A model generated the notes under the pieces. The model did not search any database and had not been told where the DNA came from. It saw nothing but the letters and a program-made list of their open reading frames with translations. Shown here piece by piece: positions 2,746-21,267 of a stretch of 64,000 nt of DNA (the stretch's first letter is position 1; every line of letters begins with the position of its first letter). Both the position numbers and the translations under genes were made by a program. Location of the stretch: the sequence record MN445183.1; one strand, given 5' to 3'.

Positions 2746-3420
2746 ATGTCAGAACAAAAATACGTTGGCCAGTTAGTGCAACATGATGAAACTGGTGATG
2801 TTACATTGCTGGGCTGGAATTACACCGGCACCACGCGCTTTGAATTACCCGTTGATGGTGTTAACGAAGGTGAACTGGCATTGGTTGATAGTGAGCTTAT
2901 CTATCAGTGGCAGAGTGGTAAATGGGTGTTTGACAATCTCAATACCTACTCGTTGTATATGCTCCAGCAAGAAGAAGCCAACCTGGAATTGATCACTGGC
3001 GCAGCCGATCCTGTTGCCGGTATTGATTTCTCGTCTAAGCCACGTAACGAATGGACCATGGGTAACTGGATTGCCCACGTGGGCGGTAGTATCCGTTCTG
3101 ATCACTTCGTGGTGTTCGGTAGCGTAATGGCTGTTGACATGATGATTCAACAGATCATCAAGAACGTTCTGGGTGTGAAGAAAGAGGGTATCAGTCTCTC
3201 TTTACGCGGTGGGACTGAACTGCAACGCATGATGCTGGCTACGGTTATTACGGGTGCGTTGGAACCTATCACAGTTAACCAGGGTTATAACCTGAAGAAG
3301 TTCATCGAGGCGCAAGGTGAAAACACCCTTACGTTAGAACAAACAATTGTCATTATGGATGCCATTGAAAACAGCGGTGGCATTAATCTCGAAATCGCAG
3401 CGGATAAGGCGGATGAATAA
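2746..3420 (+). CDS. Hypothetical protein (start revised to ATG 2746)
   Basis: GAGGA SD before ATG 2746; stop overlaps the next start (TAATG). Confidence 0.75.
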   Translation: MSEQKYVGQLVQHDETGDVTLLGWNYTGTTRFELPVDGVNEGELALVDSELIYQWQSGKWVFDNLNTYSLYMLQQEEANLELITGAADPVAGIDFSSKPRNEWTMGNWIAHVGGSIRSDHFVVFGSVMAVDMMIQQIIKNVLGVKKEGISLSLRGGTELQRMMLATVITGALEPITVNQGYNLKKFIEAQGENTLTLEQTIVIMDAIENSGGINLEIAADKADE

Positions 3421-5261
3421 TGTTACCTGAATTACGTGCTTACGAAAGACTGTCTCCTGAACTGGTCCTGTTGGCAGAAAGCCACAACACCAACGTAGAA
3501 GGTACGTTGATTACTGACTATCTGGTAACCGGTGCCCGTGGGTATGACTGGCTGTTGCAAATTCACCGTGATGCGGTGATTGTTGATTTCGAAGATATGC
3601 ATGGCTCACTGGCCAATATGAAATCAGCTGTTGATGAACTGGTAGAATACCCGTCCATTATTCGCGTACTCATCCTGGTTGAAGGTGATAAACGCACACC
3701 GATGTTTGTGGTAACCGATCTGGGCGCGGAAGGCCCTGAGATGGTTACAAAGATTAACGCACTCCTGGAAAAGAAGAACAAGACAATGATTGATAAACGT
3801 GTAATTACCCTGAACGTGCCGCTGGATTGCAAAGACCCAGTGGGCTATGTACGTGATGCGGTAGATACTTTCATGGCAACACATGGTGAACCTGGTGTGG
3901 ATTTGGATATCCGGGTAAACCCGAATGATGAAGCGATGCGCAAGCTGCTGCTGGCAGAAGTACCTAACATCAACATCGCAGATGCTTACCCGAAACCGGA
4001 TGAAGCCATCGGCACTGAAGCACCTATTGCGGTTGACATGGTGAAAGAATACACCCCGTTCATTCGTAAGTGGGCTGAAGACCGTAACATCATCGGCGGG
4101 GGTTCTACAACACTCGATCAGTTCATCAAAGGTCTGACTGAAGCGGGTGAGCTCTGGACCCACATCGGTAAAGGTCAGCGTGATCTGATGAAAGATGACG
4201 TAGGCGACGTATATGTCTGCCTGGTCAATGCGGCGGGTAATCTCGACATCAAACTCGAAGAGCACGTTCGTCCGCTCGAAGCCTTTAATGTTCACAGTGG
4301 TCGTCAGCTTTATCAGCGCCGTGGTCTGAAGCGCTATAGTTTGCAGGTCCTGTATGGACTGGCTGCGGTAGCACAATCCATTGAGAATGTGCTGGAAGCT
4401 GACAACGAACGTGATGTCGAGTTCTTCAAGACTGATTTCAGCGAAGCCTGTGCTGACGTGGTTTACGCACTGGAAACCATTGCACTGGAAAACGACTGGT
4501 CGCTGTCTGACTGCGTAATCGAAGCGTACAACGATATTCGCGATAGAAAAGGATTGATGGTAAATGGTACCTTCGTTAAAGAGAAAGATTTTACTGACGT
4601 TATGGTAAGAGCAGCGATCGCTGATGAAAGCACTAAGCCCGCTACACGTGACTATCTGAAAGAGTGGCTACAGAAGAACACCGAAGTTTGCATGCAGGCA
4701 TTGTCTGACGAAACGCAAGAGCATGACGCTTACCTGGTGAAACAAGAAGCGTTGAAGGATGCTGTAAAAGGTATGATCGGTAACATCGAAGGCGATGAGC
4801 TTGTTGTCACCTTGGGTTTATTCGGTTTACCTAACCGCGCGAACGAAGTGTTTATCATCAACCAAGAGAAGCTGAATGCGGACATCGCTAAAATCGTTGG
4901 TACCCACATCGGCGAAATCGGTTCACCCGTCTGCGACAACTCCTCTATTAACACTTGGTTGAACCGCGTTACAACGGTAGAAGTCGATAACAGTGCGGGT
5001 GTGCTGAAAGAAGCCGTGGTCCTCGATCGTGGTGAAAACCAGTACGGCAAGATTCTGGAAGTTGTTGGCCGGGTTAAGCCGTCTGACCGTGCAAGTGAAC
5101 TGTTGGCGGCAAACCACAGCTTTGGCATTCGTTCTGTTGCAGCACCAACAGCCCCATCTTCACCTAAGCTGTCGCATGTAATGGATTTGGTTGGGTTTGA
5201 TCTGGTTATTGAGAACCCGCGCCCGTTTGGTTTTGTTTCTATTCTTGACAAAATTAAGTAA
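3420..5261 (+). CDS. Multidomain protein: MazG-like NTP pyrophosphohydrolase plus C-terminal prohead-protease-like domain
   Basis: DQFIKGLTEAGEL..KDDVGDVYV and CVIEAYNDIRDRKGLMVNGTFVKE match phage MazG-like motifs; C-terminal GEIGSP..VKPS..FGIRS..FDLV resembles prohead proteases. Confidence 0.75.
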   Translation: MLPELRAYERLSPELVLLAESHNTNVEGTLITDYLVTGARGYDWLLQIHRDAVIVDFEDMHGSLANMKSAVDELVEYPSIIRVLILVEGDKRTPMFVVTDLGAEGPEMVTKINALLEKKNKTMIDKRVITLNVPLDCKDPVGYVRDAVDTFMATHGEPGVDLDIRVNPNDEAMRKLLLAEVPNINIADAYPKPDEAIGTEAPIAVDMVKEYTPFIRKWAEDRNIIGGGSTTLDQFIKGLTEAGELWTHIGKGQRDLMKDDVGDVYVCLVNAAGNLDIKLEEHVRPLEAFNVHSGRQLYQRRGLKRYSLQVLYGLAAVAQSIENVLEADNERDVEFFKTDFSEACADVVYALETIALENDWSLSDCVIEAYNDIRDRKGLMVNGTFVKEKDFTDVMVRAAIADESTKPATRDYLKEWLQKNTEVCMQALSDETQEHDAYLVKQEALKDAVKGMIGNIEGDELVVTLGLFGLPNRANEVFIINQEKLNADIAKIVGTHIGEIGSPVCDNSSINTWLNRVTTVEVDNSAGVLKEAVVLDRGENQYGKILEVVGRVKPSDRASELLAANHSFGIRSVAAPTAPSSPKLSHVMDLVGFDLVIENPRPFGFVSILDKIK

Positions 5262-5326
5262 GCATTAAACCGGGAGGGTGTCTGTTAGACGCCCTTCCTT
5301 TATACCCTTGACTTGTAGGAGTAATT

Positions 5327-6331
5327 ATGAACCAGTTCTTCATGCCTGACGCATTAACGTCAGAAATGAACAATGTCAGCTTCATTGCAAAGAGTGGCAA
5401 GTGGCTTGACATTCTTAATAAACACCTGGTGGCCACCCAAGGTAAAGGTAATCCTCGCGATGTCATTAACAGTGACTTGCTAACCAAGAACAAAAACTTT
5501 GAACGGTTGAATCGGGATGTCAAAGCCCGTTATCCCGAGCCCTTGTCTTTGGACGTGTATAATAGCGACATGCCGTTCAGCTGGCTGTGGTATGTGAACA
5601 AGGTTGTGTATCGTATCAGTCGTGAACTGATTGATGCCATTGCGGTACCGGATGACAAGGTGATCGCATTGCCTATTGATCCGTTACTGAACATCCCACA
5701 GTGGGTAACATGTGTGGCATTAAGCTGGGATAAGGGAGGGGTCAAAGACGCCGATGGGCATATCCAGCGTGCACTGATGTACGGCCTGACTAAGATCGGC
5801 GGTAAAGATTACATGATGATCGTGTTGTACATGGAAACTGAAACCGGCCTTATCCAAATGAACATCTACATCGATGTGTCGGCACCTACGATTGGTGAAG
5901 GGTTCGAATGGGCATTGCGTGACTTGCCTAATATCAAACCCAGCGAGTTTGGTCGTACCATGCGCATCACTGAGATGAGTGCCATGATTTGCGACATCAT
6001 TAACATGATCTTGTTCATTAACGGCGAATACCACAAATCGTTAGTTGGTAAATCCACTCGAGTGTGGGAGCAGCCACGTAAAGACCATGGCGGTGGATTC
6101 CGTATTAAACCTCGTCTGGCTACGGTGTTTGCAACAGTAGGTCAAGAGATGGTGGCGACTGTGGACGCGGCTAAACGCGCGCGCACTGAAGGTGGTGAAC
6201 GTCGAGCACATATCCGTCGTGGCCACTGGCATCATTACTGGACAGGTCCACGCGGCTCTAAGCAGACGTATGTACTGCATTGGCTACCGCCTATCATCGT
6301 TTCTGGTGCGGAGCTTGCGGATGATGACTAA
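5327..6331 (+). CDS. AcrVA2/FinQ-family-like protein
   Basis: 334 aa; C-terminal RAHIRRGHWHHYWTG..LHWLPPIIV and central W..VY.I..ELI..LLNIPQW match recalled AcrVA2 motifs. Confidence 0.7.
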   Translation: MNQFFMPDALTSEMNNVSFIAKSGKWLDILNKHLVATQGKGNPRDVINSDLLTKNKNFERLNRDVKARYPEPLSLDVYNSDMPFSWLWYVNKVVYRISRELIDAIAVPDDKVIALPIDPLLNIPQWVTCVALSWDKGGVKDADGHIQRALMYGLTKIGGKDYMMIVLYMETETGLIQMNIYIDVSAPTIGEGFEWALRDLPNIKPSEFGRTMRITEMSAMICDIINMILFINGEYHKSLVGKSTRVWEQPRKDHGGGFRIKPRLATVFATVGQEMVATVDAAKRARTEGGERRAHIRRGHWHHYWTGPRGSKQTYVLHWLPPIIVSGAELADDD

Positions 6332-6479
6332 ATTTTATCTTCGCCTTCGCTGGCGTATGTATGATTATCAACATACACATCCTCTGGTGACACCAGGGGT
6401 GTGGGTTTGTGGTTTGTTGATGCTGGTCATGTGGTTGTGCGACATCGCAGATCTCGTGTTTGGTTTTTATAAAGGATGA
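6321..6479 (+). CDS. Small membrane protein
   Basis: 52 aa from ATG 6321, one hydrophobic segment, fills the gap between flanking genes. Confidence 0.55.
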   Translation: MMTKFYLRLRWRMYDYQHTHPLVTPGVWVCGLLMLVMWLCDIADLVFGFYKG

Positions 6480-6944: not shown

Positions 6945-7529
6945 ATGAAAAGAACAAAAAATATCAACCATGACCGTTTCCGTAAGGTACGCCGTTATGG
7001 TACTTTGACTATGGCATTAATGGCAGTATCCGGCGCATTTGTCATGACTGGTTGTGATGAACCCGCAGACCAGCCTGTGGCGATGTACAAGAACTCAGAC
7101 GACTGTGTCAAGGCTAACCCGTCTGAAACCGAGCAGTGTAATAAGGCATGGCAGCGTGCCTTGCAGGAAAGTGACAAGACCGGGCCGAAGTACAACAGCC
7201 AGGGTGAATGCACCGATGAATTTGGTTACGGCCAATGCTACCAAACACACTCCAGTGGTGGTGGGATGGTTTATATGCCATATCCCGGTGGCTTTATGTA
7301 CGGCAACCATGGCTCATACAGCCAGCCATTGTATTCGTCTTCTCGCCCATCCAGTCCAATGTATCGCAGCTTCTCTGATGCCAGTGGACATAACTACGGA
7401 AGTTCTATCTCCGGACGTAACATCATGACCACCCGTAGCAACATCGCGCCAAAAGCTGCAACCACCTCAACCGTAACCCGTGGTGGGTTCGGTCGTTCCG
7501 TATCATCCCATGCCAGCTTTGGAGGCTAA
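6945..7529 (+). CDS. ygiB: YgiB/DUF1190 family lipoprotein
   Basis: MKRTKNINHDRFRK N-terminus, lipobox FVMTGC, Cys pattern DDC..EQC..PKY..C..EFG..QC, C-terminal TVTRGGFG. Confidence 0.85.
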   Translation: MKRTKNINHDRFRKVRRYGTLTMALMAVSGAFVMTGCDEPADQPVAMYKNSDDCVKANPSETEQCNKAWQRALQESDKTGPKYNSQGECTDEFGYGQCYQTHSSGGGMVYMPYPGGFMYGNHGSYSQPLYSSSRPSSPMYRSFSDASGHNYGSSISGRNIMTTRSNIAPKAATTSTVTRGGFGRSVSSHASFGG

Positions 7530-7531
7530 GC

Positions 7532-8197
7532 ATGATCAGTTTTTACCCTTACCCGTTGGAAACAAAGAAAGACATCTCTAACCGCACCAGAAAGATATTT
7601 AAAGACTATCTTAGAAATCGGATTCCGGGCCGCACATTGTCTTACGCGCAGTGGCTTCGTATTTTTGAATACCAAAATTGGTCAGAGAACTGGTTTACCC
7701 GTGAGAAACACATCCGCCGCTACGGCTTTGTTATCCAGACAACGGAAGTGATCAGCCGTCTGTCGTTCTTCTTACGCGGTCTTAATGTACTGGACGTCGG
7801 CGCAGGCGCTGGTTACCTCAGCGAATGCTTGCGTCATCGGGGTACACGTATTACGGCTATCGATAACTTCAGTCATTCCTATTGTGGCGGTGATTCATTC
7901 CGCAAAGTAAGTCGTGGGGTGATTGAATGTGACGTGCGTGATCATGACGTTGCTAAATACCAGGCCGTTATTTTAAGCTGGCCGCATGATGGCATGGAAA
8001 CCCTCAGTAAAATGGTGACCGGTCAGTACTTGATCTACCAAGGTGAAAGTTGGGGTGGTTGCACTGGCAGTGACGAGTTCCATGAATGTCTGAACGATGA
8101 AGAACAGTTTGTGGGAGTGGATGCCGATTTCCTCAATGAATACGCGTTGCAGTTTAGCGGTATTCACGATCGCTGGTATATTTACAGAAAGATGTAA
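7532..8197 (+). CDS. Class I SAM-dependent methyltransferase-like protein
   Basis: VLDVGAGAGY motif I, IAIDN motif II, ILSWP..YQGESWGGCTG. Confidence 0.75.
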   Translation: MISFYPYPLETKKDISNRTRKIFKDYLRNRIPGRTLSYAQWLRIFEYQNWSENWFTREKHIRRYGFVIQTTEVISRLSFFLRGLNVLDVGAGAGYLSECLRHRGTRITAIDNFSHSYCGGDSFRKVSRGVIECDVRDHDVAKYQAVILSWPHDGMETLSKMVTGQYLIYQGESWGGCTGSDEFHECLNDEEQFVGVDADFLNEYALQFSGIHDRWYIYRKM

Positions 8198-15677: not shown

Positions 15678-16625
15678 ATGCTTGAGTTAATGTTAGCAGG
15701 AAACAATGTCACCATAGTACCTGGATCTGGGCCGGGTAATAAAAAGCTTTTAGCAGGTGACAAAACAGACGGTTGGTTTGGGATGATTGACTCCGGTGAA
15801 ATGCCGATACCGCAATTAATGCTGAACGAAGCCGGTGGCGGGATAGCGTCACTACCCCAGCAGGCAAGTGTACCATTGCGCTGGATGAAAGCGGTTATTA
15901 ACGGTAAATACATCTTTGTTGCCAATACACCGTTTAACACATACCCTTTACTGGACCTCTATAACCGCGGACAAGTCTTCGGTACCGATGATAACGGGAT
16001 TAGCCCGCCGTCCAACCGTTATAACGATCAGAACCAGTTACAGATCGTTACGCATATCGACAAAGCCGGTAAAGTGTGGGCGTTTAAATTAAGGCTGCTG
16101 AGTCACAGCTCTAACGACAAACCTACTTCTACGTCCGCATCAGCTGCGGAACTTGCCGGAGCCGAATCGTTTAAGTTATACTCGCACGTCATCAGCGGCA
16201 TGATTGCCGATGATGGTAAACGCTGGGATAACCTGGTTAACGGTGTTGATTACTACGCTGCGTGGTCAACAAGTCGAACAGTCTATGGAACACAGTTCTT
16301 GTGCCGTGTACAAAACAGCCCCCGTGCTGGCGGCAACTGGTGGGGCAACACCACGTCCTATAACTGGTTCCCGGTATTGGAGGTTATCGATCCTGATGTT
16401 GACATTATTCCTCCAGTCAACATTGCTTTTGAAACCATTAGTTTGTCCGGCACAGGCACTACAGCAACAAGTGATGCAATCACAATGATTCCTAGCGAAC
16501 TCAATACGCTACCACAAATCGAAGTCGCGCCACATGTCAAAGCGTCGGATGACAATGCGATCGCTATGACGCCGTCCGAGCTTGCGAAACTTGACCACGC
16601 AGAACGCCCGGCGTTCATGAAATAA
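15678..16625 (+). CDS. Putative virion structural protein, cassette 1 gene A (MLE-tag plus paralogous domain)
   Basis: MLELMLAG start; GPGNKKLLAG..GWFG..W.KAVINGK.IF..WFPVLEV domain shared with six other ORFs in the window. Confidence 0.7.
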   Translation: MLELMLAGNNVTIVPGSGPGNKKLLAGDKTDGWFGMIDSGEMPIPQLMLNEAGGGIASLPQQASVPLRWMKAVINGKYIFVANTPFNTYPLLDLYNRGQVFGTDDNGISPPSNRYNDQNQLQIVTHIDKAGKVWAFKLRLLSHSSNDKPTSTSASAAELAGAESFKLYSHVISGMIADDGKRWDNLVNGVDYYAAWSTSRTVYGTQFLCRVQNSPRAGGNWWGNTTSYNWFPVLEVIDPDVDIIPPVNIAFETISLSGTGTTATSDAITMIPSELNTLPQIEVAPHVKASDDNAIAMTPSELAKLDHAERPAFMK

Positions 16626-16635
16626 CAGGTGACAC

Positions 16636-17472
16636 ATGTACATACATTTGAAATGGGCCAATAAGAACACGCAGGATGTTTCTGTCAACATCTATCGTTC
16701 ATTGACCGCTATCGATCGAAACAATCCGGGTACACCGTTGGTCACACTAGCGGGTGATGTGGAAGAATACATTGACCGTGCAGTAACACAGGGCACAACG
16801 TATAACTACGTCATCCAGTTTGTCAAAGGAGCAAACAAAGTCACCTCGCGTAACTATACGTTCACGGCAAACTATCAACGTGGACCTGGGAACAATGTTC
16901 CAGTGTTGGGTAATGATGACTATGGTTTTATGTGGTACGGTCAGTTTGGAATGGCTAACGATATTCTGGCTAAATTGGGTATTTACCGTGAAACCAGTAA
17001 CCCTACTGATAACCCATCGATAATGGCCTACAAATGGAGCTTGAAAGGGGAGGTGTACTATTTGTTGTACATTGGCGGTAACTTGGTCAACACAGCCAAT
17101 GCGTTAGCATTTAGTAAAAGCACTGAACCGAAACCTGTTACGTTTGACGGGATCGACTACCTTGCTTCAATGCCGGATTACAAAGGCGATGGCTGGGTGC
17201 AGACCGACTACAGTACCAAACCACCAGTCGGTGATAGAAGTATGGCTACTCGGTTAACGTTACCGTATCTTTACTACATCAGTAATCGCGGTATACCGGG
17301 TGAGGAGCTGGGATGCATCGGTTCTGCCGCTCTGTCTAACGCTCACGTGAGTGTAACTGACCCAACGTCAGAGCGTTTTACATGCTGGCGTGCGGATATC
17401 GACAGTATCGTCCACTACACAACACTTAGCTCTAGTTACGTCTATCCCGTCATTCTTAAACTTGTGGAGTAA
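16636..17472 (+). CDS. Putative virion structural protein, cassette 1 gene B (FN3-like plus paralogous domain)
   Basis: LKWAN..NIYR..Y.D..V..GTTYNYVI FN3-like pattern; paralog of 19470..20306 (both 278 aa). Confidence 0.7.
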   Translation: MYIHLKWANKNTQDVSVNIYRSLTAIDRNNPGTPLVTLAGDVEEYIDRAVTQGTTYNYVIQFVKGANKVTSRNYTFTANYQRGPGNNVPVLGNDDYGFMWYGQFGMANDILAKLGIYRETSNPTDNPSIMAYKWSLKGEVYYLLYIGGNLVNTANALAFSKSTEPKPVTFDGIDYLASMPDYKGDGWVQTDYSTKPPVGDRSMATRLTLPYLYYISNRGIPGEELGCIGSAALSNAHVSVTDPTSERFTCWRADIDSIVHYTTLSSSYVYPVILKLVE

Positions 17473-17474
17473 TC

Positions 17475-18413
17475 ATGTCAATTACTTTAAACTGGAGTAA
17501 CCGCGGTCAGGCAGTTACCAGCGTGAAGATTTACCGTAATTTACATCGTAGCGAGACTCCGACGTTACTCACCACGTTGAACACCCCTGATGAGACATAC
17601 ACCGACACTACCGCAGAAATGAATAAACTTTATTTCTACAGAGTGGCGCTGGTCATCGGTGATGAAGAGGTTCCAGGGGCGGTGGTACCAATGATGTCTG
17701 TGAACGATACCGGCCCTGGACCTAAGGCGTTGGTCGCCGGCACCATGGAGTATGGGTATTTTGGCACGCTGACACCCGATGAGTTTTTGACAACCTCGGA
17801 TGTTCAGCGTGTCGGGACCCCTAACGGGTTCACCAGTTATTCGTCAGGCACTATCGCACTCTGGCGTAAATTTGCCAACATGGGGAGAATCATTTATATT
17901 CCCAACGCGCCGGTATGGCAGGTATCCACAGCCACTACGGGGATCAACGCACTACAGTTACTATACAGCAGTGGTTATCTGTATGGCGGTGGTGGTACGG
18001 ACAGAGCTCCAGGACTTACCGGATCCCGGGCGCAGGACAAGAAAGCAACGTTAGGTGCCTATGAATTCTACGTCAGGGTGCCAAATGCTGAGTATGACCG
18101 TGACCCAACAACGCAGTATACAACTGGCACGTCATTCAACACTTATGGTGGTGAGGTGTCCATGGTTGCATCGGCCAATAACTACGGACCGATTCAGTCT
18201 TATATTTCTGCCGGGGCTGGTTGGCCACGCATTGCACCACCAACTACGTTAACCGCCATTGGACACGGTTATCTCTTGACATCGACGATGGCTAATAACT
18301 TACAAGTCACCTTCTTTGCCAACCAGCAGCAGTCTGTTGGCACCAGTGTTGCCGGGACAACCGCCAACGTCATATTTGGCTTCTTGACCATTTTGGAATT
18401 GATTCTTGGTTAA
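17475..18413 (+). CDS. Putative virion structural protein, cassette 1 gene C (FN3-like plus paralogous domain)
   Basis: MSITLNWSN..KIYR..YTD..YFYRV; GPGPKALVAGTMEYGYFG; paralog of 20308..21267. Confidence 0.7.
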   Translation: MSITLNWSNRGQAVTSVKIYRNLHRSETPTLLTTLNTPDETYTDTTAEMNKLYFYRVALVIGDEEVPGAVVPMMSVNDTGPGPKALVAGTMEYGYFGTLTPDEFLTTSDVQRVGTPNGFTSYSSGTIALWRKFANMGRIIYIPNAPVWQVSTATTGINALQLLYSSGYLYGGGGTDRAPGLTGSRAQDKKATLGAYEFYVRVPNAEYDRDPTTQYTTGTSFNTYGGEVSMVASANNYGPIQSYISAGAGWPRIAPPTTLTAIGHGYLLTSTMANNLQVTFFANQQQSVGTSVAGTTANVIFGFLTILELILG

Positions 18414-18447
18414 TATAAGGCAGGGCTTCGGCCCTGCTTTTATACCG
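18414..18447 (+). terminator. Hairpin terminator between the duplicated cassettes
   Basis: GCAGGGC-TTCG-GCCCTGC followed by TTTTATACCG. Confidence 0.8.
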
Positions 18448-18487
18448 CTTGATGATATGTATCCACTGATTATAAAAGGTTCGCGCT

Positions 18488-19459
18488 ATGTTAGAGATAC
18501 TTATTTTTGGAGGTGGCGACGGCGATAATTATCTGCCAAACTCAGGACCTGGTAACAAACGACTGATAAAAGGATCAAAGGACGAAGGGTGGTTGGGGTT
18601 AGTTGATGTGCGGTTAATGCCTTCTATATTCCAGGCCGCTGATAGAATCGGATTAAACGTTACACCGTTCACCGGCAGTAACACGGCAGCACCGCGTTGG
18701 TTTAAAGCGATCATTGATGGGAAAGCAATCTTCTTTCCAAACGGTCCATGGGTTAACCCACTGAACTTCACTGACATCTATTACAAGGGCGGTGTGTACG
18801 GGATTGACGGGGTCGGACCTAACGGAACACCGCCGAGTAACGTGGGAAGTGGCGTAAACCAGCTGCAATATTTAGACTGGATTGATCCTGAAGGTCGAGC
18901 GTGGTTGTTTAAGATACGTTTAATCAAAGGCAACAATCCGGTTTACGTCACCAACCAAAGTTCGGTAACCACAACATCAGCCGCCGATGCTGAGTTTTGG
19001 CGATTGGTGGGTCGCGTGGTGGCTAACAGCACGATTGCGGCCAGTGACCGTTGGGATAACCTTGTACTCAATGTTGACTACAAGGATTCTCGCCTTCACG
19101 ACCAAACCATCACCTCCGGTTACTACCATGCCGTATCTGACTTCTTGAAACCCGCCACAGGGTCCTGGAGTCAGTCGGGCTTCAGCAACAGCTATGATTG
19201 GCGACCGGTACTTGAAGTGGTTGATCCTGCAACCACGTTTGTTCCCCCTATCGCACCTCGTGGTGTTACGCCTCGCGGAATAACCCTAAACCCATCCATA
19301 TCGGGCTCGGCGGGGTTCCTGGTTGCTGGCGATGTTTTATTAACAAATCAGAAAACAATACCGTTAGCGACACGCACGAGCAGTAATGCCTTTACCGTGG
19401 CTGGTAATGTATCTACTATAGTGATGCCGGTTGCGCCGATTAACCCAACGCTAAGCTGA
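18488..19459 (+). CDS. Putative virion structural protein, cassette 2 gene A
   Basis: MLEILIFGG start; paralog of 15678..16625 (GPGNKRL..GWLG..RWFKAIIDGK..RWDNLV..WRPVLEV). Confidence 0.7.
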   Translation: MLEILIFGGGDGDNYLPNSGPGNKRLIKGSKDEGWLGLVDVRLMPSIFQAADRIGLNVTPFTGSNTAAPRWFKAIIDGKAIFFPNGPWVNPLNFTDIYYKGGVYGIDGVGPNGTPPSNVGSGVNQLQYLDWIDPEGRAWLFKIRLIKGNNPVYVTNQSSVTTTSAADAEFWRLVGRVVANSTIAASDRWDNLVLNVDYKDSRLHDQTITSGYYHAVSDFLKPATGSWSQSGFSNSYDWRPVLEVVDPATTFVPPIAPRGVTPRGITLNPSISGSAGFLVAGDVLLTNQKTIPLATRTSSNAFTVAGNVSTIVMPVAPINPTLS

Positions 19460-19469
19460 GGTAAGTAAC

Positions 19470-20306
19470 GTGTACATCGATTTAAAATGGGCTAATGTTA
19501 ATACAGGCCCAATAACGACTAACATTTATCGCGGAACGTCGCCTTTGGATAAGACCAACCTTGGCACCCCGGTCGCCGTCTTAACCAATAAAGAAGTCAC
19601 CTGGCGAGACCTTAATGTCACCGCCGGCACAACGTACTATTACGTTATCGAGTTTGACGACGGTAATGGCAATAAAGTTTCAACACGGGTGTTTACCATT
19701 GTGGCGAACTACATCCGTGGGCACGGTAACGCGTCCGTTATGCTGGGTGACCAGAACTACGGGTTTATGGATTACGTTGCCCCTGGTCGACTGCTTGGCG
19801 TATTGACCTCAGCGGGGTTCTCACCCACGGGTATCTCGGATGTCAACTTTGGCCCTGCGGTAAAGTTCTCGTACAACAACAAGGTGTACTTTAGCATTTT
19901 GCAACAGGCCAACCAGGTTGGGTCAACGTTAAGCGTGATGACACCGTTGCTCAACAACGACGCCGGTATACCGGTTACCATTGATGGATTTAACTACATC
20001 CTGCGGATGGCAAAGGTATTGGGGCCCAGCTGGGATGGCACATCTAAACCTGCCAGCCAAGCAGATTTGGATGAATATTACATCAAGTTCATTTTACCAC
20101 AGTTTAACTATTTGCCAAATTGGGAAGGTGAATCGCTGGGTAAGGTTAATAACCTGTCAGCAACCAACACCGTGTTCGGACGGGAAGTGGTGTCCAACAC
20201 CATTGCAAGCCGGGTTGGTCGTAATGGCGCCATTGTCTGGAACGCCTCGACTCTGGCATTAACGGCTTCCCAGTACATCCCTTTCATTTTAGAATTGGTG
20301 GAATGA
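19470..20306 (+). CDS. Putative virion structural protein, cassette 2 gene B
   Basis: GTG start after GAGGT SD; MYIDLKWAN FN3-like; paralog of 16636..17472. Confidence 0.7.
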   Translation: MYIDLKWANVNTGPITTNIYRGTSPLDKTNLGTPVAVLTNKEVTWRDLNVTAGTTYYYVIEFDDGNGNKVSTRVFTIVANYIRGHGNASVMLGDQNYGFMDYVAPGRLLGVLTSAGFSPTGISDVNFGPAVKFSYNNKVYFSILQQANQVGSTLSVMTPLLNNDAGIPVTIDGFNYILRMAKVLGPSWDGTSKPASQADLDEYYIKFILPQFNYLPNWEGESLGKVNNLSATNTVFGREVVSNTIASRVGRNGAIVWNASTLALTASQYIPFILELVE

Positions 20307-20307
20307 C

Positions 20308-21267
20308 ATGTCAATTACATTGAATTGGACAAATAAAAACCCCAACACCACGAACTTTAAAGTGTATCGTGGGACTTCGAAAACTGCGTTGTCTTTATTA
20401 ACCACGCTTGCCAGTTCCGCCACGACGTATACGGATAACGCCGCCGTAAACAACACGCTGTACTACTACCAGGTTAACGTGGTATTGGGTGGATTGGATG
20501 AAATCCCTGGCGCTATTGTCCCGCACGCCGCAGTCACCGATACAGGACCCGGACCAACAACTCTCATTGCCGGCAGCATGGAGTGGGGGTTCTTCGGCAC
20601 GATTCCCGTCGCTGAGTTTATCAGTGATTCGGCATACAAGGCGTTGTCTGCGGTCGGTAACGCATACTCGACGGCGATCACTAGCTGGTACAAGTTTGCT
20701 TACAAAGGCAAGATACTGTTTGTGGCCAGCGACCCGGCCAGAACCCAAACCGTTGCACCGTATATGTTTGCCAAAGCGATATATAACGAAGGCGCGTACC
20801 TTGGTACAGGAGATAGTTCGTTACCGCACACGTTGGTGGGTGCGTCGGCTGTACCACAAACGAAACGGGCGACGTTTGGCTCGTACGAGTTCATTGTGCG
20901 TGCAATGAAAGCCAACGAAACCACACCAGCTAATGCGAACGGTATCACCAACAGCTATAACCCGCCAGTCTCACGCGAACCCATTTTCTCTGAAGCAAAC
21001 CTGATTGCTTCCGGGAGCAGTAACTGGGCCGTTGTGGCGCCATACCTGGCGGCTGGACTGATGCCACCTAAGTTGATTGGGTCTGGTGGATTGATCGGCC
21101 CGTATCAGAACAGCTACTTCATCACTCAACACTTCAACAACGCATCGTCGTATTACGCGTTAATGATGGTTAATAACAATACGTCCACTACGAGTGTTTC
21201 CACGTATGCTTATCAGACATCCATAGCGTGCGTGTTCCTACCGATACTGGAATTAGTTACCCCGTAA
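20308..21267 (+). CDS. Putative virion structural protein, cassette 2 gene C
   Basis: MSITLNWTN FN3-like; GPGPTTLIAGSMEWGFFG; paralog of 17475..18413. Confidence 0.7.
   Translation: MSITLNWTNKNPNTTNFKVYRGTSKTALSLLTTLASSATTYTDNAAVNNTLYYYQVNVVLGGLDEIPGAIVPHAAVTDTGPGPTTLIAGSMEWGFFGTIPVAEFISDSAYKALSAVGNAYSTAITSWYKFAYKGKILFVASDPARTQTVAPYMFAKAIYNEGAYLGTGDSSLPHTLVGASAVPQTKRATFGSYEFIVRAMKANETTPANANGITNSYNPPVSREPIFSEANLIASGSSNWAVVAPYLAAGLMPPKLIGSGGLIGPYQNSYFITQHFNNASSYYALMMVNNNTSTTSVSTYAYQTSIACVFLPILELVTP

Follow-up and report, generated by a model that had tools for sequence, protein, structure and literature searches.

AcrVA2, a protein encoded by a Moraxella bovoculi prophage beside acrVA1, is described as the first case in prokaryotes of a protein reading a nascent polypeptide and then destroying a specific mRNA, and it is highly specific, cas12a being the only expressed gene that is significantly down-regulated (Marino et al., bioRxiv 10.1101/2022.11.29.518452). 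In the same study, the AcrVA2 residues H286, R288 and H291 were required for the down-regulation of both the mRNA and the protein of Cas12a, and mutations of W79 and D89 had moderate effects. A passage of a 2026 review (PMC13728456) of Marino et al. (Nature 2026) places the C-terminal part of AcrVA2 on ribosomes and polysomes and attributes the cleavage of the mRNA to a cellular enzyme, not to AcrVA2. Within the family, translation-dependent, nascent-peptide-directed mRNA decay and ribosome association are established for AcrVA2 only. The other studied relative, FinQ, is plasmid-borne, lies next to trbA and acts on F transfer genes. About 1,800 orthologues occur on plasmids and megaphages, mostly in hosts that lack Cas12a, and Marino et al. 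proposed other targets for them; AcrVA2-like proteins in huge phages had already been reported (Al-Shayeb et al. 2020, PMC7162821).

We analyzed a stretch of 64,000 nucleotides (nt) from the 288,012-bp record MN445183.1 of Salmonella phage vB_SalM_SA002 (hereafter SA002); this stretch is called the window, and its positions equal record positions minus 62,000. The gene in question, at 5327..6331 on the plus strand, is a clean frame of 334 codons with an ATG start and a TAA stop, corresponds to QKE54392.1 (ACSA002_0780) and has the same guanine-plus-cytosine content as the SA002 genome. Its product is a genuine, intact member of the AcrVA2/FinQ family (Pfam PF26125). Reasoning by analogy with AcrVA2, we consider it on balance probable that this AcrVA2-family protein of a chimallin-encoding phage would act at the ribosome and bring about nascent-peptide-directed decay of an mRNA other than that of Cas12a.

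Neither the homology nor the idea is new. GenBank labels the coding sequence "hypothetical protein", with a note by the depositors that it is 24.7% identical to FinQ of E. coli, and the nearest named homologue, gp231 of Erwinia phage Special G, is annotated "putative protein FinQ" (36% identity). A first-pass annotation of the window had read the gene as an AcrVA2/FinQ-like protein of a phiKZ-like jumbo phage with an undescribed counter-defence target. Its family and its phage type stood up to analysis, but such a target had already been put forward in print, by Marino et al. for the megaphage and plasmid orthologues. Since the idea has been published, the value of the present case is that of a candidate and a testable lead, not of a new concept. 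What is added here is the confirmation at the level of residues and fold, the context of a chimallin phage, the loss of the residue equivalent to D89, and the finding that the gene is fixed and highly constrained in the SA002 clade.

Family membership, fold and essential residues

In a single-sequence phmmer search of all PDB chains, AcrVA2 (7ci1/7ci2) was the sole real match of the window protein, with E = 1.6e-7. A profile of 11 relatives, built from the window protein itself, three closely related metagenomic proteins, six homologues from phages and the FinQ of IncI1 plasmids, matched the AcrVA2 chain 7ci1 with E = 1.5e-22, and the alignment paired profile positions 79-322 with chain residues 72-318, a span of approximately 245 residues. 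The likeness to AcrVA2, which the first-pass annotation had drawn from short strings and a similar length, is far beyond chance. Both strings were found in the protein, W88...NKVVYRISRELI...PIDPLLNIPQW.T.VALS at amino acids (aa) 88-133 and RRAHIRRGHWHHYWTG...LHWLPPIIVSG at aa 292-327, and the lengths are indeed close, 334 aa here and 323 aa in AcrVA2.

Scans of the window protein against Pfam-A, NCBIfam and PADLOC gave no match. As the control scans with FinQ and with proteins named "AcrVA2 family anti-CRISPR protein" by NCBI were also blank, these libraries lack a model of the family, and the blank scans therefore say nothing on membership. On the other hand, precomputed PF26125 "AcrVA2-like" tags are borne by relatives that are 76-99% identical to the window protein. 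A scan of PHROGs returned phrog_6160 alone, a group of "unknown function". The size of the family became visible only with an exhaustive search of cluster representatives; a word-indexed protein search had retrieved 7 and then 12 proteins.

The AlphaFold2 model of the window protein, computed with 86 family sequences, had a mean predicted local distance difference test score of 85.8 and a predicted template-modelling (TM) score of 0.85. When the model was compared with the PDB using Foldseek, the AcrVA2 entries 7ci1/7ci2 were the only matches at E <= 1e-3 (E = 2.4e-11, probability 1.00, TM 0.53-0.59), the next-best match having E = 0.14; sequence identity to AcrVA2 in the structural alignment was 15-17%. 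According to the model, the window protein has the AcrVA2 fold, in which six helices at the N terminus are followed by a middle domain of alpha/beta type and by a C-terminal module of four strands; the literature describes the same three-part architecture for AcrVA2-type proteins. The six helices of the N-terminal domain cover aa 1-92 (5327..5602, plus strand) in the secondary structure of the model. Across the family, conservation is lowest in this domain, which can be aligned within the SA002/Agricanvirus subfamily only. At its N-terminal edge, the middle domain, delimited from the model and the alignment at aa 93-290 (5603..6196, plus strand), carries the conserved block W88...P116...P124.W126, and aa 131-215 form a variable sheet region. 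The C-terminal basic module at aa 291-327 (6197..6307, plus strand) shows the highest conservation in the family, and its predicted strands lie at residues 295-297, 300-306, 314-320 and 323-325.

Residue-by-residue alignments to 7ci1, in which we allowed for the numbering of the PDB AcrVA2 chain being native plus one, placed the HxRxxH motif of the window protein (H295, R297 and H300; 6209..6226, plus strand) on the essential AcrVA2 residues H286, R288 and H291, and the longer C-terminal motif H-x-R-x-x-H-W-H is identical in the two proteins. The three residues are invariant both in the profile alignment (11/11) and among the relatives (86/86). The conserved tryptophan is likewise common to both, W88 here corresponding to W79 of AcrVA2, and its column holds W in 84 of 86 relatives. 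In contrast, conservation between the two does not extend to the N-terminal domain or to the segments with which AcrVA2 contacts its peptide. The mean share of the top residue across the family was 0.61 for aa 291-327 and 0.52 for aa 88-130, compared with 0.31 for aa 131-215 and 0.29 for aa 1-87. At the sequence level, this pattern agrees with the published view that a constant effector at the C terminus is joined to a variable recognition part.

FinQ of IncI1 plasmids (for example BCH38435.1 on pN126, LC567065.1) is a distant relative in the same family, with an overall identity of ~21-25% to the window protein. A tblastn search of 7.3 Gb of plasmids recovered it at 25% identity over 72% of the query (E = 4e-4), and BLASTP aligned the C-terminal 47 residues only, at 47% identity; the invariant columns P116/P124/W126 and H295/R297/H300/Y304/W305/G307/W319 are common to the two proteins. 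This detectable relationship, the abundance of such plasmids in Salmonella and E. coli, and the 604 plasmid records, mostly conjugative, that encode relatives of the window protein would suit a FinQ-like fertility inhibitor that lowers the expression of the transfer genes of a resident conjugative plasmid. However, FinQ and the window protein barely align beyond the C-terminal module, which implies that their specificity regions differ, and the phage protein departs from FinQ in its N-terminal half as well as in its genomic setting, a lytic jumbo-phage genome instead of an IncI/F-like conjugative plasmid. Fertility inhibition has no evident benefit for a lytic jumbo phage, and the mechanism of FinQ is itself not settled (Marino et al.). 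We therefore regard such a role as quite improbable.

A chimallin-encoding jumbo phage and its relatives

Judged by its genes, SA002 is a phiKZ-like jumbo phage, although the NCBI taxonomy places it in "unclassified Caudoviricetes" despite its hallmarks of Chimalliviridae. Using synteny and a PDB search, we found a chimallin/PhuN homologue outside the window, at 193174-195246 of MN445183.1; this 690-aa protein is annotated as a hypothetical protein and matched phiPA3 PhuN (8fne) with E = 3.5e-28 and chimallin (7sqt) with E = 1.6e-21. Its gene adjoins the gene of a beta-type RNA polymerase subunit, and the same pairing is found in Special G. The RNA polymerases are split, beta-type subunits being annotated at six SA002 loci, and the genome further encodes a phiKZ_IP internal head protein (E = 2e-51) and a Peptidase_S80 domain (E = 9e-7). 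A Pfam scan of ten large SA002 open reading frames (ORFs) for chimallin or tubulin detected phiKZ_IP only. Together, the chimallin homologue, the split polymerases, phiKZ_IP and S80 support, at the level of genes, the phiKZ-like nucleus suggested in the first-pass annotation, and SA002 is probably of the nucleus-forming type. In the literature searched, the phage receives a passing mention only.

The setting thus differs from that of AcrVA2, a lytic, chimallin-encoding Salmonella jumbo phage in place of a Moraxella prophage. Salmonella enterica carries type I-E CRISPR-Cas, and to our knowledge it has no type V-A system; unlike for AcrVA2, Cas12a is not expected in the host. A true anti-CRISPR against Cas12a, like AcrVA2, would be in keeping with membership of the same family and with the essential HxRxxH residues being in place, but the identity to AcrVA2 is low, the binding regions are unrelated, and most hosts of the orthologues are without Cas12a. 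In studied relatives of SA002, moreover, the chimallin shell already keeps out DNA-targeting nucleases. There is also no acr-aca operon: among the two genes upstream and the eight genes downstream, Pfam and PHROGs detected no family of helix-turn-helix or other DNA-binding regulators, and the sole "DNA binding protein" PHROG matches nearby overlap with the MazG domain that the gene upstream encodes. The earlier remark that no aca gene is adjacent accordingly holds as far as these two libraries can see. We consider activity against Cas12a highly unlikely. The target is probably a different one, since Salmonella carries type I-E, the hosts of orthologues mostly lack Cas12a and the contact segments are variable.

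The window protein matched 1,369 clusters (50% identity) at E <= 1e-3 and 6 clusters at E <= 1e-30, these 6 representing the subfamily with a shared N-terminal domain (SA002-like phages and Agricanvirus); most cluster representatives align from residue ~87 onward only. Matches were found in 82 records of sequenced phages, mostly jumbo phages of Erwinia, Klebsiella/Serratia, Dickeya, Salmonella and E. coli; they cover the Chimalliviridae genera Agricanvirus, Risingsunvirus, Seoulvirus and Siatvirus and, outside that family, Sasquatchvirus Y3 and Alexandra-like phages. Small temperate phages match too, for example a Pasteurella P2-like phage with the gene beside the integrase, and the 75 matching IMG/VR loci are mostly on contigs of ordinary phage size. 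Full-length alignments that include the N-terminal domain were obtained with the proteins of the Erwinia phages Special G (gp231), MadMel and AH06, at 34-36% identity and E-values of ~1e-53 to 1e-59. The other, more distant jumbo-phage homologues (RisingSun, the Seoulviruses EC001 and JN03, Siatvirus, Y3, Alexandra-like phages and Dickeya phages JA13 and AD1) share the region from aa ~87 onward only. Structural matches to AcrVA2-like proteins of jumbo phages in BFVD had E-values from 1e-13 to 1e-19. The AcrVA2-like gene of EC001, Lh1B and JN03 had no match in SPN3US at E <= 1e-20, which suggests either that the gene is variable within Seoulvirus or that the SPN3US record lay outside our collection. 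The RisingSun homologue, gp126 (L003:3701-4702), is annotated as a "putative mycothiosynthase"; this looks like a misannotation, because Foldseek matches the protein to the model of the window protein with E = 2.8e-19.

In Special G, gp231 lies four genes downstream of the chimallin-like gp225 and the RNA polymerase gene gp226, and it is not syntenic with the SA002 copy, which is at 67 kb; the SA002 equivalent of the Special G locus (193-200 kb) has no such gene. Closer to SA002, the position of the gene is fixed, as three SA002-like metagenomic contigs and a 273-kb IMG/VR genome, with a similar map position, share the order of a MazG/S80 gene, the AcrVA2-like gene and then a DUF1353 tail-chaperone-like gene. 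Compared with the relatives L014, L016, L017 and L018, the identity was 75-82% for the AcrVA2-like gene, 39-47% for the gene upstream and 35-70% for most neighbours; by these sequence comparisons, few genes of the neighbourhood are as well conserved in SA002-like phages as the AcrVA2-like gene. The proportion of nonsynonymous differences (pN) was 0.11-0.15 with synonymous sites saturated, and the ratio of nonsynonymous to synonymous rates (dN/dS) was ~0.05 where it could be computed. The N-terminal domain, with pN of 0.11-0.14 against close relatives, is strongly conserved inside the SA002-like clade and is constrained there as much as the rest of the protein. A chance likeness or a pseudogene, which we also considered, is ruled out by the E-values, the confident fold and the low dN/dS.

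A fixed syntenic position, conservation among the best of the neighbourhood and strong purifying selection that includes the normally variable N-terminal domain are also what one could see if the protein regulated the expression of the phage itself or of a competing phage, as a temporal switch or a superinfection or inter-phage factor that uses the same nascent-chain-directed mRNA decay. The mRNAs of chimalliviruses are translated in the cytoplasm, and it is there that such a regulator would act. Yet the family is patchy in jumbo phages, with no Pseudomonas phiKZ-type phage matched by the window protein, and the gene is found at a different place in Special G. The presence of the family on plasmids and in temperate phages, too, is more what one expects of an accessory conflict gene than of a core regulator, and we find this explanation unlikely.

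Proposed mechanism and points against it

Taking family, fold and essential residues as a guide, we propose that the window protein would work in the cytoplasm at translating ribosomes, where its variable N-terminal and middle domains would recognize a particular nascent polypeptide. The conserved basic HxRxxH module at the C terminus, which by analogy corresponds to the AcrVA2 region needed for mRNA down-regulation and reported to be ribosome-associated, would then trigger the decay of the mRNA under translation via a recruited cellular RNase. Rather than Cas12a, the polypeptide recognized would more likely be a conserved protein of the host or one encoded by a rival mobile element. That the recognition domains are so strongly constrained throughout the SA002-like clade points to a single conserved target, probably the same one for the phages of the clade. 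A more specific and more tentative version, which we consider possible but rather doubtful, is that the protein of the SA002 clade turns the AcrVA2 mechanism on a conserved, non-CRISPR target that represents a cytoplasmic threat, either a host defence acting at the level of RNA or translation or the product of a rival plasmid or prophage. The emphasis on the cytoplasm comes from the phage DNA being already shielded by the chimallin shell.

Several points weigh against the proposal. The mechanism is drawn wholly from homology, at the 15-17% identity to AcrVA2 given above, and FinQ, the other relative studied, is itself without a settled mechanism (Marino et al.). The equivalent of AcrVA2 D89 is S98 in the window protein; the column holds D in 47 of 86 relatives, S in 10 and P in 10, and as this residue is not universal in the family, S98 does not exclude membership. 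The AcrVA2 residues that touch the Cas12a 620-636 peptide lie where the alignment is variable or has insertions and have no conserved counterpart here, so no target can be identified from them. Finally, a counter-defence gene would not usually be so highly conserved or so fixed in its synteny, and going by these sequence comparisons the protein could have a housekeeping role in the phage cycle.

Some of the same features bear on a further explanation, namely that the fold and the C-terminal module have been kept for a nonspecific or different function on ribosomes or RNA, such as a general shut-off of host translation or the binding of RNA with no single nascent peptide being recognized. The C-terminal module is strongly basic (11 K/R/H versus 1 D/E), the corresponding part of AcrVA2 is described as ribosome-associated in the review passage cited above, the residue equivalent to D89 has been lost, and no target can be deduced. 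The specificity of AcrVA2 itself for cas12a speaks against a general effect, however, as does the strong purifying selection to which the N-terminal and middle domains are subject in this clade and which implies a specific ligand. We judge this explanation improbable, to about the same degree as a regulator of phage expression, and retain the decay of a particular non-Cas12a mRNA as the preferred reading.

Surrounding features and the value of the SA002 copy

A Shine-Dalgarno sequence, AGGAG, can be read straight from the sequence at 5317..5321 (plus strand), 5 nt before the ATG of the AcrVA2-like gene. The 65-nt spacer that separates this gene from the MazG/S80 gene holds a G+C-rich stem-loop with a 12-bp stem at 5272..5298 (plus strand), for which the RNA folding energy is -25 kcal/mol (z = -3.24 versus shuffles). 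It may be a transcript-end or processing hairpin; with only three T residues after it, it is not a canonical intrinsic terminator, and a consensus terminator scan did not call it. In three related phages, the same spacer holds two small genes (77-126 aa) that are absent from SA002. When the surroundings of the gene were scanned with the sigma-70 consensus, promoter-like sites were fewer than in shuffled sequences and none lay upstream, but this consensus is uninformative for a phage with its own polymerases. No second AcrVA2-like copy was found with tblastn in SA002, the search excluding record positions 50-54.5 kb and 176-240 kb.

The gene upstream, at 3420-5261 (plus strand), is annotated "nucleoside triphosphate pyrophosphohydrolase", and its 613-aa product is a fusion of a MazG-like pyrophosphatase (aa ~197-413) and a part resembling Peptidase_S80 and head maturation proteases (aa ~461-598). 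The long form with the S80 match is kept in the relatives L016 and L017, and the gene diverges much faster, at the 39-47% identity given above, than the adjoining AcrVA2-like gene. Downstream, an annotated ORF of 52 aa at 6321..6479 (plus strand) has an 11-nt overlap with the AcrVA2-like gene at the stop of the latter, to which it is possibly coupled in translation. Its product is hydrophobic with a membrane-like C-terminal half, has no Pfam or PHROG family, and has a counterpart (55% identical) in only one of three relatives.

The genes that follow encode small proteins without an assigned function, a DUF1190 protein and a weakly methyltransferase-like protein. The DUF1190 gene at 6945-7529 (plus strand; E = 7e-39) is 84.5% identical in L017 and absent from L014 and L016, and looks like an accessory gene. 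The 221-aa product of 7532-8197 (plus strand) had sub-threshold matches to Methyltransf_23 (E = 2.8e-4) and FtsJ (E = 3.7e-3); a match of 58% identity was found in L016 and none in L014 or L017. Farther downstream, at 15678-21267 (plus strand), six consecutive genes for proteins of ~280-320 aa each carry the annotation "putative virion structural protein", and they look like a tandem array of paralogues.

The AcrVA2/FinQ family is very large, yet its known targets are Cas12a and, loosely, the F tra genes. The SA002 copy is useful for the search for a second target, being intact, strongly constrained and fixed in position within its clade, with Cas12a not expected in the host. Its target would also show what nucleus-forming phages still must silence in the cytoplasm. 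If the AcrVA2 mechanism is indeed turned on a non-CRISPR target here, that target would be the first assigned to the large, Cas12a-independent part of the family.

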